A stretch of DNA of 49,715 bases, from contig NW_021834318.1 in NCBI RefSeq assembly GCF_006345805.1, forward strand, positions 1-49,715, read 5' to 3'. Numbering within the stretch: position 1 is the first letter of the stretch; the number at the start of each line of letters is the position of its first letter. Made by a program: the position numbers and the translations under genes. The notes below the pieces were generated by a model. It ran no database searches, had not been told where the DNA came from, and saw only the letters and a program-made list of their open reading frames with translations. Source of the DNA: Octopus sinensis (lineage: Eukaryota). Of the stretch, positions 40,101-49,413 are shown piece after piece.

Positions 40101-40372
40101 ACTCAAAAGAAGCAACAAGAATATCTTCGGTAATTTGTTACGATCGTTTCACGCTACATCATTTTATTAAACATTGTAAGTATTACAACAGTTTTAAAAT
40201 GTTGAGCAATCATCAGCCATTAATAGAGGTTTTCCATCAATACATATACTTATTTTCATGTTAAATGATAACATTATAAAGAGGGTAGATATACCCCATG
40301 GATAACACCGTACAAAATTCTGGTGCATCTAATTTAAGTATCACATTCATTTCAATCTAAATTTTGCTGAAC
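40101..40372 (-). mobile_element. Hammerhead-bearing ORF-less element, family B copy 1
   Basis: Shares terminal AAGAAGCAACAAGA and the GAATGTGxTACTTAAxTTAGATGCACCAGAA block with 41575-42035; flanked by microsatellites. Confidence 0.65.
40131..40224 (-). ncRNA. Partly decayed minimal type I hammerhead ribozyme
   Basis: CTGATGA ... GAAAC-GATC-GTA. Helix II extension CATTTTA/TAAAATG is present; helix I and the helix II closing pair are mismatched. Confidence 0.55.
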
Positions 40373-40468
40373 GTATATATATATATGTGTGTGTGTGTGT
40401 GTGTGTGTATGGTCTCTTGCAAGAAGTTTATGGACCGTCTTCTCTGATGACACCACTTTGAAGCAGGG

Positions 40469-41155
40469 ATGGTAAAGAACTTCGTGATTCACAAGGAATT
40501 CTGCGATGGGGGCAAGAACACTGATGCACTTTTGAATCAGCAGTTTGTAGTTAGTGAAGATGTTCTCAATCTCATACCTGGATTACCCGTGAAGGCAGCA
40601 CTCGCAGAACCACCAAAGTTGGAAGAAGTTGCAGTGGCTGTCTCAATGATGAATATTGGGAAATCTCCGGGCATGGATGGCATACATGCGGAGTTGTTAC
40701 AGCATGGTGGTGAGAAACTTCTGCAGCAACTTCACTCTTTGTTTGGTAAGATATGGGCTAGTGAATCTGTACCTGAGGACTGGAGAGATACAGTAACGGT
40801 GGTCTTGTATAAGGGAAAGGGCAACAGGAATGATTTTGGTAACTATAAGGGAATATCATTGCTTTCTGTCGTAGGAAAGGTTTTATGCAGGGTACTTCTG
40901 GATCGTCTGCTGAAACACGTTGCAGATTGTGTTCTTCCAGAAAGTCAATCTGGCTTTCATGTGGGACGTGGCACTGCTGATAGGATCTTTTCAGCTAGAC
41001 AGCTTCAGGAGAAGTGTGTGGAACAGGGTCTGGATTTGTATCAGGTTTTTGTCGATCTGACAAAAGCCTTTAATACCGTTAATAGAAAAGCATTGTGGAA
41101 AGTCCTCCAGAAACTTGGGTGTCCTGAAAAGTTCCTTGCTTTGGTGGAAGGGTAG
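40469..41155 (+). mobile_element. RTE (BovB-like) LINE RT N-terminal fragment
   Basis: GKSPGMDGIHAELL..VPEDWRD..LYKGKG..NYKGISLLS..LPESQSGF..ARQLQEKC..VFVDLTKAFNTV. Confidence 0.92.
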
Positions 41156-41574
41156 TCAACACTCAAGACAGCTATTATGCTGTCCCCAACAGAAAAACCA
41201 CTACGTGGATTCTTTTGAGACTAGTAAGGAACAATTATGAACATTTTTATTACACTTAACTTTTTAAAATATTTTTGATAAGGTTCGTTTTTATCAAGGA
41301 CCAAAATATGTAAAATAAAAATTTATCTTATATAGTAGCGTTTTTCAAACTTCGTTTTTATACACACACACACACACACACACACACACACACACACACA
41401 CACATATATATATATATATATATATATATATCACCGTGACCGACCAGGCCATCAGATGTTGTTACACATCGCTGGTCACAATGTGCTTTGCATTGTTTTA
41501 GCCTTCAAATGACGCCATCCCGCTGGCTAAGCGAGCAGGCCAATATATATATATATATATATATATATATGTAT

Positions 41575-42035
41575 ATATAAAAGCAATTAAGATTCAAATC
41601 AATTCTAAAGAATTTACTTGAATGTGGTACTTAACTTAGATGCACCAGAAAACTATATGGTGTTAACCATACAGTAATGTGGGGTGATTATAAACGAGAA
41701 AGAAGCAACAAGAATGGATTAGTTTTTAGTACAATTGTTTCATACAAAGACAGGCTTTATTACAAGTTGCAAAAATTGCAGCAGATAAAAATGTCCCGTA
41801 CTCATCAGCTAAAATACATGTGAGTTCTCCAAACATCTTATTGGGTGAGGCTATACTCATGAAGTATTGGAGATAATTTCATTTAAGGCAGATTTAGGTT
41901 GCAAACAGATTTCCAAAGTTCCTTAATGATGATGCACAGTCTTTTATCTGCTGCAATTTTTGCAACTTGTAATAAAGCCTGTCTTTGTATGAAACAATTG
42001 TACTAAAAACTAATCCATTCTTGTTGCTTCTTATA
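41575..42035. mobile_element. Hammerhead-bearing fold-back element, family B copy 2
   Basis: ~90-bp inverted repeat (41700-41790 vs 41941-42030); full ribozyme on minus, 3' half on plus (41981-42010); (TA)n on both sides. Confidence 0.75.
41724..41814 (-). ncRNA. Minimal type I hammerhead ribozyme (most canonical copy)
   Basis: TTTTAG-CTGATGA-GTAC...GTAT-GAAAC-AATT-GTA-CTAAAA: 6-bp helix I, intact core, GUA cleavage triplet, palindromic helix III. Confidence 0.85.
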
Positions 42036-47755: not shown

Positions 47756-47894
47756 ATATATATATGTATGTATGTATGTATATATATGTATGTATATATA
47801 TATATATATATATATATATGTATATATATATATGTATGAATATATATATGTATGTATATATATATATATATGTATATATATTATATATATATTC

Positions 47895-49048
47895 AAAGTG
47901 AGATAGGGGTTATGAGTGTAACCCACTATGGGATATCAGTTCTCCAATATACTGCCAGTAAAGTACCCAAAAGGCTAATATATAAATGCTTACAGTTGCA
48001 ATGCAATTAGTTCATTTATTGTATTAGATGGCGAAGGTAAAATATTTTACCTCAAATTCATAATACAAATAATAAAATGGAGGAACAGATTCCTTTCAAT
48101 CATCGACTTACAGATATTACCAATTCATATAATTTATTAATTAATTAAATAGGAACATCCAAATCCAACAGAATAAAACAATATACATCAATAAGTAAAA
48201 TAATACCATAAAAATATTACATATAAAATGAATCTTACAGCTGTTTCAGCCTGTAGATAAAAGTATCTCATTGTGCCTATATTAGTCCATATGCATCTGT
48301 CTATATATTATATTATATTGTGTTACACTGTATTATATTATACTATATTTTATGTGGTATTTTCCATCTACTATGTATTGTGAATAGCAGAATGCACATA
48401 TTCCATTATTGGTATTATTAATAATAAAATAATATTAATTTTTTTGGTAATGTAATACAATGACCTTTGGACTTTTTATGTGTACCCTTTGATGTGGATA
48501 TATATGTATACTCCAGTATATATATTTGATTATCTGTAACCTTATGTGTATGTATATTATTATATATATCCTTATATATATGTATATACACTTTATATAT
48601 ATATATATATATTATATATATATATATATATATATATTATAATATATAGATATATATAATATATCATATATATATATATATAATAATATATATATTCTTG
48701 TATATATTCTTGTGTATGTGTATTTTGTTTCATATTTTATTTGCATTTTATATTTTCATAATTGTACTTTATAATCTCTGACGAGGCCCTGAGATATATA
48801 TATAACTCATTATTAACTGCATATTTAACTCATTTTTAACTGAATAATATAGGCACATAAGATACCTTTATCTACAGGCTGAAACAGCTGTAAGATCCAT
48901 TTTATATGTAATAATTTTATGGTATTATCTTACTTATTGATGTATATTTTTTTATTGTTTTATCTGTTGGATTTGGATGTTCCTATTTAATTAGTTAATA
49001 AATGATATGAATTGGTATTATCTGTAAGTTGATGATTCTTATTTGTAT
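47895..49048 (+). mobile_element. Hammerhead-bearing fold-back element, family A copy 3
   Basis: Terminal block 47897-48060; ~200-220-bp inverted repeat (48062-48285 vs 48845-49048); half ribozyme on minus (48232-48285), full on plus; (TA)n on both sides. Confidence 0.78.
48774..48896 (+). ncRNA. Minimal type I hammerhead ribozyme
   Basis: ATCT-CTGACGA-GGCC...GGCT-GAAAC-AGCT-GTA-AGAT; intact core, distal helix II partly eroded. Confidence 0.8.
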
Positions 49049-49350
49049 TATATACGTATATTATATATATGTATATATATGTATATATATATATATATAT
49101 ATATATATATATATATATGTATATATATATATATATATATATAATATGTGTGTGTATAAAAAACATTACGTTATATAATTAGGGTTTAGTAAAAAAAATT
49201 ACTTTACCACACACCAAACTTTTAGAATAGCAGCCAAAAAGTTTAGCTATTTCCTCTACTATAAAAAAGTCTCCCAGACAATGTATACTCAAAATAATTC
49301 ATGTAGGTGTAGAGGGGAAAAATAACGAAAGGTCACACGTACATCGATTA

Positions 49351-49413
49351 CTTGAGAACGCGCGTTTCTGGATTAGTTGGATATAGAGATCAACATTTCC
49401 GTCATCAGCCAAG
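49351..49413 (-). ncRNA. Compact type I hammerhead ribozyme, family C
   Basis: CTTGG-CTGATGA-CGGA...TCCA-GAAAC-GCGC-GTT-CTCAAG; intact core, one helix I indel and a C-A closing mismatch. Confidence 0.65.

Follow-up and report, generated by a model that had tools for sequence, protein, structure and literature searches.

Hammerhead motifs in short octopus retroelement copies, probably inserted head-to-head in (TA)n arrays in a Penelope-like manner

We describe here a cluster of hammerhead ribozyme motifs in a stretch of the Octopus sinensis genome (NW_021834318.1, 49,715 nt, hereafter named the window), of which the cluster occupies the last ~9 kb. The motifs are real, not chance matches. They are carried by short retroelement copies devoid of open reading frames (ORFs), and the anatomy of these copies suggests that they were in all likelihood inserted head-to-head in (TA)n in the manner of Penelope-like elements (PLEs), by a PLE enzyme acting in trans. 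Elements of this kind are known, and undescribed for cephalopods: PLEs are an annotated order of transposable elements in Octopus vulgaris (PMC13282606), and a full-text literature search returned no paper describing hammerheads in cephalopods. Two traits are unusual: helix II is giant, and the long extension is strictly one-sided.

Both strands of the window were searched with the regular expression C[TC]GANGA-N(4-150)-GAAAC-NNNN-GTH, which returned exactly 6 sites, every one of them within 40.1-49.4 kb. These sites, together with three half copies that have GAAAC-NNNN-GTA and no CUGANGA, are listed below.

40139-40216, minus strand: hammerhead A, CUGAUGA…GAAAC-GAUC-GUA
41730-41808, minus strand: hammerhead B, loop AAUU
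43086-43204, minus strand: hammerhead C1, CCGAAGA, that is U4 changed to C
44015-44133, minus strand: hammerhead C2, CUGAAGA, AGCU loop
48778-48892, plus strand: hammerhead C4, CUGACGA
49357-49408, minus strand: hammerhead D, CUGAUGA…GAAAC-GCGC-GUU
41991 (plus strand), 44284 (plus strand) and 48247 (minus strand): half copies

An earlier note on this DNA had announced six cores and three half copies. All were recovered, with offsets of a few bases because the earlier coordinates include helix I flanks, and the half copies proved to be arms of inverted repeats.

As a baseline for chance, 300 dinucleotide-preserving shuffles of the window were used. They contained on average 0.08 sites (strict core) to 0.12 sites (relaxed core) per window, and 2 at most. 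The block GAAAC-N4-GUH occurs 12 times in the window, 9 times in the cluster region and 3 times elsewhere. Its loop is palindromic (AGCT, AATT, GATC or GCGC) at 9 out of 9 sites of the cluster region, for a background of 6.6% palindromes in C-NNNN-G contexts; if each distinct loop 3 tetranucleotide is counted once, 4 out of 4 are palindromic. The blocks at 24191, 37256 and 35175 were rejected, having non-palindromic loops and no CUGANGA. A strict descriptor, with at least 3 contiguous pairs beside the core in helix I and in helix II, was passed by B, C1, C2 and C4, and exact-core sites numbered 3 for 0.11 expected. The earlier statement that most motifs have helix I and helix II arms holds for these four out of six, and not for A and D, where adjacency fails. 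Relaxed-core sites at 22140 and 25544 were also rejected, with a core mismatch and within a chance expectation of 1.36.

Five motifs (A, B, C2, C4 and D) have the complete type I core (C3 U4 G5 A6 N7 G8 A9, G12 A13 A14, A15.1-U16.1, and H17 not G). C1 deviates by its U4 to C change, which is of an inactivating type, its helices I and II being intact. Helix I is open and core-adjacent in B (6 bp) and in C1, C2 and C4 (4 bp each). Helix III has only 2 bp with the palindromic loop on top, but in every family A15.1-C15.2-NNNN-G16.2-U16.1 forms a perfect self-complementary 8-mer, which suggests motifs built for dimer or protein-assisted cleavage. In line with dimer action, the MFE (minimum free energy) homodimers of A, C1 and C2 computed with RNAcofold contain an intermolecular 8-bp AC-NNNN-GU duplex, helix II being retained.

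The rod that forms helix II measures 33 nt in D and 96 nt in family C, with A and B intermediate at 59-60 nt. In B, 7 or more contiguous pairs, which can be prolonged beyond one bulge, carry a 56-nt insert. In C2, GGCC/GGCU is followed by the 96-nt rod, helix I being AUCU/AGAU, and in C4 the basal helix II is intact and the distal rod decayed. D has a helix II of 3 bp, with C·A at 10.1/11.1, and a helix I of 5 bp with a bulge. In A, helix I is apart from the core and 10.1/11.1 is U·U, so that A is probably a decayed ribozyme. Judged from the sequence, B and C2 look intact and would be the best candidates for present-day activity, while the other four seem impaired, by U4C in C1, by the lack of a basal helix I in A, by decay of the distal rod in C4 and by weak stems in D.

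Covariance models recognized part of this set. On narrow ranges, the Rfam model RF00163 (Hammerhead_1) aligned over all its 45 positions with B (41724-41814, minus strand, 19.4 bits, E 0.016) and with D (49351-49413, minus strand, 15.3 bits, E 0.25). Every core position was matched in both alignments, and the helix II insert was the sole large penalty: 56 nt where the model expects 10 in B, and 33 nt where it expects 14 in D. An Rfam scan at E<=10 over 10 kb reported no hammerhead, C1, C2, C4 and A being undetected in this region-wide scan, and returned only microsatellite 'miRNA' artefacts. It is mainly because helix II is a long rod that the motifs are invisible to routine annotation. The Infernal check proposed in the earlier note gave no match at the gathering score, and full-length RF00163 alignments of B and D in narrow ranges.

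Unconstrained folding of single sequences recovered the hammerhead helices for C2 only, whose MFE structure holds helix I (AUCU/AGAU) and helix II (GGCC/GGCU and the rod). Z-scores were unremarkable (-1.75 to +1.5), as is expected for ribozymes designed to act as dimers. Unconstrained RNAalifold on C1, C2 and C4 returned helix I as well as a helix II delimited exactly by CUGANGA and GAAAC; both sides were changed in 6 pairs of family C. On A and B, both sides were changed in 5 out of 17 pairs of helix II. When the hammerhead structure was imposed on the 5 family C sequences, 91% of the cells were paired, versus 26-44% with slid partners. Pairwise identity in family C reaches 92% over core, helix I and basal helix II, versus 54% (554/1030 positions) for the rest; conservation beyond background, on which the earlier note had made its reading depend, is therefore seen in the family C copies available.

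The copies form three families, A+B, C1+C2+C3+C4, and D alone, with no mutual similarity by BLAST, in agreement with the earlier proposal of three unrelated families. A and B are homologous (mean column identity 77%), and both sides of loop 3 have changed between them (GAUC versus AAUU), the palindrome being kept. The proposal that the elements are ORF-less was also borne out: no stop-free frame within them exceeds 84 codons. A 77-codon stop-free frame, at 49302-49532 on the minus strand, crosses hammerhead D; it was the only element frame scanned, and had no Pfam match.

We then consider how these sequences are arranged. The half copies are the second arms of inverted repeats, as follows.

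41700-41790 / 41942-42032: inverted repeat B, 100% complementary
42829-42999 / 43208-43379: inverted repeat C1, 97% complementary
43928-44032 / 44278-44382: inverted repeat C2, 95% complementary
48098-48287 / 48842-49037: inverted repeat C3/C4, 90% complementary

Arms of one insertion are 90-100% identical, and separate family C insertions 72-80%. Since the family C insertions differ to this extent, each inverted pair arose in one event. Read 5' to 3', the unit comprises a 5' region, the 3' strand of helix I, CUGANGA, the very long helix II, GAAAC, the palindromic tetraloop, GUH (the cut site), a 3' region and a fixed short 3' end, beyond which lies an optional extension of 122-173 nt leading to a fixed long 3' end. 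The copies found in the cluster are the following.

40107-40293, minus strand: insertion A, minus copy, with ~77 nt of 5' region, hammerhead A and a 32-nt tail; its short 3' end '…attcttgttgcttctt' adjoins (TA)n(CA)n
40294-40369, plus strand: insertion A, plus copy, 5'-truncated, consisting solely of the long 3' extension (Y module), which matches the 3' extension of B(-) in the sense orientation and ends at (TA)n(TG)n
41578-41941, minus strand: insertion B, minus copy; hammerhead B is preceded by 133 nt of 5' region and followed by a 30-nt tail, then by the 122-nt Y extension (41578-41699), which terminates at (TA)n
41942-42032, plus strand: insertion B, plus copy (half copy), starting inside helix II, with GAAAC-AATT-GTA at 41991-42002 and its short 3' end at (TA)n
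42829-43216, minus strand: insertion C1, minus copy, with hammerhead C1 and then a 257-nt 3' region; its short end '…cttatcttgtat' adjoins (TG/TA)n
43208-43546, plus strand: insertion C1, plus copy, 5'-truncated; its extension X (43380-43546) ends at (TA)n
43645-44277, minus strand: insertion C2, minus copy; hammerhead C2 has 144 nt of 5' region before it and, after it, a 197-nt 3' region and then extension X (43645-43817), which terminates at (TA)n
44278-44494, plus strand: insertion C2, plus copy (half copy), starting 6 nt before GAAAC (44284-44295); its short 3' end '…cttattttgtat' adjoins a TA-rich array
47893-48290, minus strand: insertion C3/C4, minus copy (half copy), starting inside helix II, with GAAAC-AGCT-GTA at 48236-48247, the 3' region and X (47893-48062); it ends at a (TA)n that also abuts a LINE (long interspersed nuclear element) 3' end
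48696-49048, plus strand: insertion C3/C4, plus copy, in which hammerhead C4 is flanked by at least 82 nt of 5' region and by a 156-nt 3' region; its short end '…cttatttgtat' adjoins (TA)n
49166-49715, minus strand: element D, with hammerhead D and ~190 nt of 3' region ending at the (TA)n toward which C4 is also directed; the window end cuts this element off

The 5 insertions out of 5 are head-to-head pairs of 5'-truncated copies with their 3' ends outward, and every outer end adjoins (TA)n or (TA)n(TG)n. Two discrete positions account for the 3' ends, and independent insertions share them within a few nt. In family C, the short end is '…cttatYttgtat' and the long end, 167-173 nt further, '…aacccctatctcaY'; in family A/B, the long end is ~122 nt beyond the short end '…attcttgttgcttctt'. 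Each arm has its own 5' end, located anywhere between 592 nt upstream and 87 nt downstream of the cut site. Fixed 3' ends combined with variable 5' truncation point to reverse-transcribed copies. Each of the 5 insertions has one short arm and one long arm, independently of which arm is the more 5'-complete. The C1 plus copy has no ribozyme because its truncation lies ~87 nt beyond the cut site, and its junction with the minus arm (43205-43216) is ambiguous over an overlap of ~10 nt. The cut site is read through by 5 arms and none starts at it, which suggests that uncleaved RNA was the template for those copies. With (TA)n flanking the insertions on either side, any target-site duplication is masked. 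Larger (TA)n arrays than those of the cluster lie at 1983-2862 and 3475-3967, and the first 40 kb of the window are without any hammerhead element. As this array-rich part is free of them, insertion appears clustered beyond microsatellite availability.

Several features of the copies deserve mention. Between the arms of C3/C4, the segment 48291-48695 is unique sequence with an internal (TA)n and has no match elsewhere in the window; it may represent filler DNA, a different element or the 5' portion of the C unit. In family C, extension X terminates in a conserved stem-loop (AUAG-GGGUU … AACCC-CUAU, its loop being AC-rich), 7-15 nt before the insertion end, at the places listed here.

43477-43546, plus strand: X terminal stem-loop of C1
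43649-43718, minus strand: X terminal stem-loop of C2
47897-47966, minus strand: X terminal stem-loop of C3/C4

It recalls, as a resemblance only, the AC-rich stem-loop where the reverse transcriptase (RT) of the PLE protein PAc initiates. The 3' strand of stem II contains an AUG (acAUGGcuGAAAC) at 43097-43110 and 44026-44039 on the minus strand, and at 44271-44284 on the plus strand. In C1 and C2 this AUG, 17 nt before the cut site, opens a low-complexity frame of 43-55 codons; it is absent from C3 and C4. A spurious 73-codon frame from X/L gave no candidates when compared with a protein database.

A transcript across any of the insertions listed below would form a near-perfect double-stranded RNA (dsRNA) hairpin of 90-215 bp, a rival to the hammerhead fold. 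Long dsRNA hairpins are the type of substrate used by editing or small-RNA pathways.

41700-42032: hairpin-forming insertion (B)
42829-43379: hairpin-forming insertion (C1)
43818-44494: hairpin-forming insertion (C2)
48098-49037: hairpin-forming insertion (C3/C4)

Both ribozyme design and insertion anatomy match published PLEs (PMC4209133, PMC8557442, PMC11167929), which upholds the Penelope-derived part of the earlier interpretation. PLE and metazoan type I hammerheads are characterized by a palindromic loop 3 and by action as dimers, and a double-hammerhead design has been described for newt, Schistosoma and PLE ribozymes (PMC4209133). With the hammerheads of PLE pseudo-LTRs (long terminal repeats; Cervera & de la Peña 2014, PMC4209133), the present motifs share type I topology, a helix I of 4-6 bp, a helix III of 2 bp with a small palindromic loop and expected dimer action, a core kept among sequences that are diverse across families, and a location in the terminal region of a retroelement. 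They differ by a helix II insert of 33-96 nt, where PLE hammerheads have 6-8 bp and a small loop, by a 10.1-11.1 pair that is mostly a wobble or a mismatch instead of G-C, and by having no RT/GIY-YIG ORF attached in this window.

Concerning the insertions, canonical PLEs have hammerheads in their pseudo-LTRs, are heavily 5'-truncated and often have an adjacent inverted truncated copy (PMC8557442). They often carry a 'tail' of 30-40 bp at one end only, and (TA)n is preferred by some clades (PMC8557442, Craig et al. 2021). Purified PAc cleaves and extends both DNA strands with an AT-rich preference, initiates reverse transcription from two sites inside the RNA, by which the tail is delimited, and uses unprocessed RNA as its main template; its hammerhead is protein-assisted and dispensable for insertion in vitro, and its ORF begins at stem II (PMC11167929, Frangieh et al. 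2024). The octopus insertions share with these the inverted 5'-truncated neighbours, the two fixed 3' ends, the AT-rich or (TA)n target and templates uncleaved at the ribozyme. Their one-sided extension resembles the PLE tail in its placement, but not in its length. What sets them apart is this extension of 122-173 nt, on exactly one arm in 5 out of 5 cases, and a distance from cut site to short end of ~30 nt (A/B) or 156-257 nt (C), versus ~90 nt in PAc.

By analogy with these systems, a PLE endonuclease would cut both strands of AT-rich or microsatellite DNA, and reverse transcription of the element RNA would be primed by each 3'-OH, from one or the other of two start sites within that RNA. 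Both cDNAs would then be joined in the middle of the insertion at variable 5' ends, with an ambiguous overlap of up to ~10 nt at the C1 junction. The role of the ribozyme would most likely be to trim multimeric or read-through transcripts, as a dimer or with the help of a protein.

The asymmetry of one short and one long arm is present in two families without mutual sequence similarity. Tentatively, it might be the footprint of a dimeric PLE enzyme with two fixed RNA start sites 120-170 nt apart. Under this same proposal, the tail would be far longer than those known, and it is possible, if doubtful, that the motifs make up a hammerhead subclass whose helix II rod of 60-100 nt is missed by covariance models.

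Other origins have to be weighed against insertion of ORF-less elements by a PLE enzyme. The copies could be 3' ends of heavily 5'-truncated autonomous PLEs, that is solo pseudo-LTR fragments, instead of dedicated ORF-less families. The longest copy is below 1 kb, so that an upstream ORF would be lost in any case, and the stem II AUG of C1 and C2 is placed like the PAc ORF start. Yet coding sequence is reached by none of the 10 arms, no conserved sense frame exists past the cut site, the 43-55 low-complexity codons are lost in C3/C4, and no PLE ORF was seen among the window frames scanned; we hold this origin to be a reasonable possibility, though not the one we would bet on. Non-LTR retrozymes, which are tandem arrays whose monomers are excised by two flanking hammerheads and circularised, are improbable. 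Animal ones have been reported as derivatives of PLE pseudo-LTRs (Cervera & de la Peña 2020, PMC7229834; Li et al. 2026, bioRxiv 10.64898/2026.07.22.740005), and they share with the octopus elements the lack of ORFs, the low GC content, the type I hammerhead with a weak helix III and a palindromic loop 3, and the proposed PLE origin. However, animal retrozymes are head-to-tail tandems yielding circular RNAs, whereas here we see head-to-head pairs, each made of one complete ribozyme and an inverted partial copy, and no insertion is directly tandem. C2 and C1 are on the same strand, 929 nt apart, yet they are separate insertions (72-80% identical) with an inverted X module and (TA)n between them, and the C1 core is mutated. 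Tandem Repeats Finder and repeat searches found no direct tandem of units in the window, and the retrozyme-like part of the earlier interpretation is not supported, as no insertion is such an array with two same-sense ribozymes flanking a unit.

Foldback elements or miniature inverted-repeat transposable elements (MITEs), that is DNA transposons targeting TA in which hammerhead-like strings would be incidental, would account for the long inverted repeats (arms of 91-215 bp, 90-100% complementary) and TA-rich flanks, and a genuine foldback element exists at 34200-34954. The inversion breakpoints, however, differ among C1, C2 and C3/C4 and indeed in every insertion, and the outer ends of each insertion are unlike, one short and one long, which argues against a cut-and-paste foldback element. 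The complete ribozyme may moreover be in either arm relative to the X module, and the hammerhead blocks are far better conserved and recur in 3 dissimilar families, always with a palindromic loop; we consider this origin very unlikely. An inverted structure due to twin priming by the machinery of neighbouring LINEs, instead of a PLE, seems equally far-fetched. LINE copies lie in and beside the cluster, and one LINE 3' end shares its (TA)n with C3. In twin priming of the L1 type, a single RNA supplies the inverted and the direct segment as neighbouring parts, and only one of them carries the 3' end; here, in contrast, both arms carry the 3' region, duplicated over 91-215 nt, and the elements have no 3' sequence in common with the LINEs. 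As for chance matches in AT-rich repetitive DNA, multiplied by repeat copies, they could be invoked from the lack of Rfam matches at gathering scores, from 3 of the 6 sites belonging to one family, and from the poor basal helices of A and D. But about 0.1 site is expected by shuffles even with each family counted once, all loops are palindromic, RNAalifold closes the helices de novo and RF00163 spans B and D fully. A chance origin was rejected by the shuffles and the palindrome statistics, and its probability is close to nil.

A number of observations weigh against the Penelope-like interpretation itself. On the ribozyme side, Rfam gave zero matches at gathering scores over the whole window, the 19.4 bits of B and 15.3 bits of D compare with a gathering score of 34 for RF00163, and C2 and A had no Rfam match even on narrow ranges. 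A and D fail the helix-adjacency descriptor, their basal helices being poor, and the pair 10.1-11.1, usually G-C, is G·U in B, C2 and C4, U·U in A and C·A in D. Covariation was computed from 2-3 sequences per family and did not exceed the shuffle control. On the insertion side, the extension of 122-173 nt is to be compared with the 30-40 bp of PLE tails, and near-perfect inverted repeats beside microsatellites are an assembly-error-prone setting. Regarding the machinery, a Pfam scan covered 45 of the 227 stop-free frames of at least 60 codons, picked by length from 1-40 kb, together with the RT-bearing ORFs: no GIY-YIG or PLE-type RT was found in these frames, and the three RTs of the window belong to LINEs of the endonuclease/exonuclease/phosphatase type. 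The link to PLE machinery thus rests on the analogy of anatomy. Finally, copies beyond the window were recovered neither from the metagenome, viral and prokaryotic collections nor from an Argonauta locus. An exact 20-mer of the family C core had at least 5 matches in metagenome contigs, bacterial-looking chance matches without CUGANGA; viral contigs and prokaryotic genome contigs had no element matches, and the Argonauta locus (L006, 22 kb) had no hammerhead motif.

The surroundings of the cluster contain other repeats. The LINE copies are the following.

36370-38496, minus strand: LINE with a long open RT frame of 672-709 aa
40451-41152, plus strand: LINE RT fragment, between A and B
44832-47745, plus strand: LINE, frameshifted endonuclease and RT copy, between C2 and C3

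Among named sequences, the LINE RT is closest to one from Argonauta hians (58% identity), and a homologue 88% identical is present on a 3.2-kb Logan contig (L007); the 672-aa LINE ORF of the window is not on record. The foldback/MITE-like palindrome at 34200-34954 has nested inverted arms, 92-100% complementary, and is dissimilar to the hammerhead families. SINE-like (short interspersed nuclear element) units of ~190 bp are present as short tandems at 16116-16471, 16756-17128 and 19072-19507, and dispersed between B and C1 at 42040-42430; their motif 'gggactgaacccggaacc' looks tRNA-derived. Sub-threshold Rfam matches to mir-297, mir-1277, mir-466 and mir-3149 were rejected, as they are (TA)n/(TG)n microsatellites, located as follows.

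40035-40105: microsatellite behind miRNA look-alikes
42440-42830: microsatellite behind miRNA look-alikes
44490-44870: microsatellite behind miRNA look-alikes
47750-47890: microsatellite behind miRNA look-alikes
49050-49160: microsatellite behind miRNA look-alikes

These results are of use to annotators and provide a natural record of PLE insertion, and specialists would not be surprised by them. Real hammerheads are missed by Rfam at gathering scores in a genome of the cephalopod type; because long helix II inserts evade annotation, ribozyme counts in PLE-rich genomes such as that of the octopus are probably underestimates. Several 'unknown' inverted repeats beside (TA)n arrays are now explicable as retroelement insertions. 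The five insertions provide natural examples of PLE biochemistry, in which both strands are primed, synthesis begins at two sites and uncleaved RNA serves as template, and they add a systematic arm asymmetry to what has been published on it. If this asymmetry is indeed the footprint of a dimeric enzyme, cephalopod genomes may hold many unannotated ribozymes, together with a natural record of PLE twin priming.

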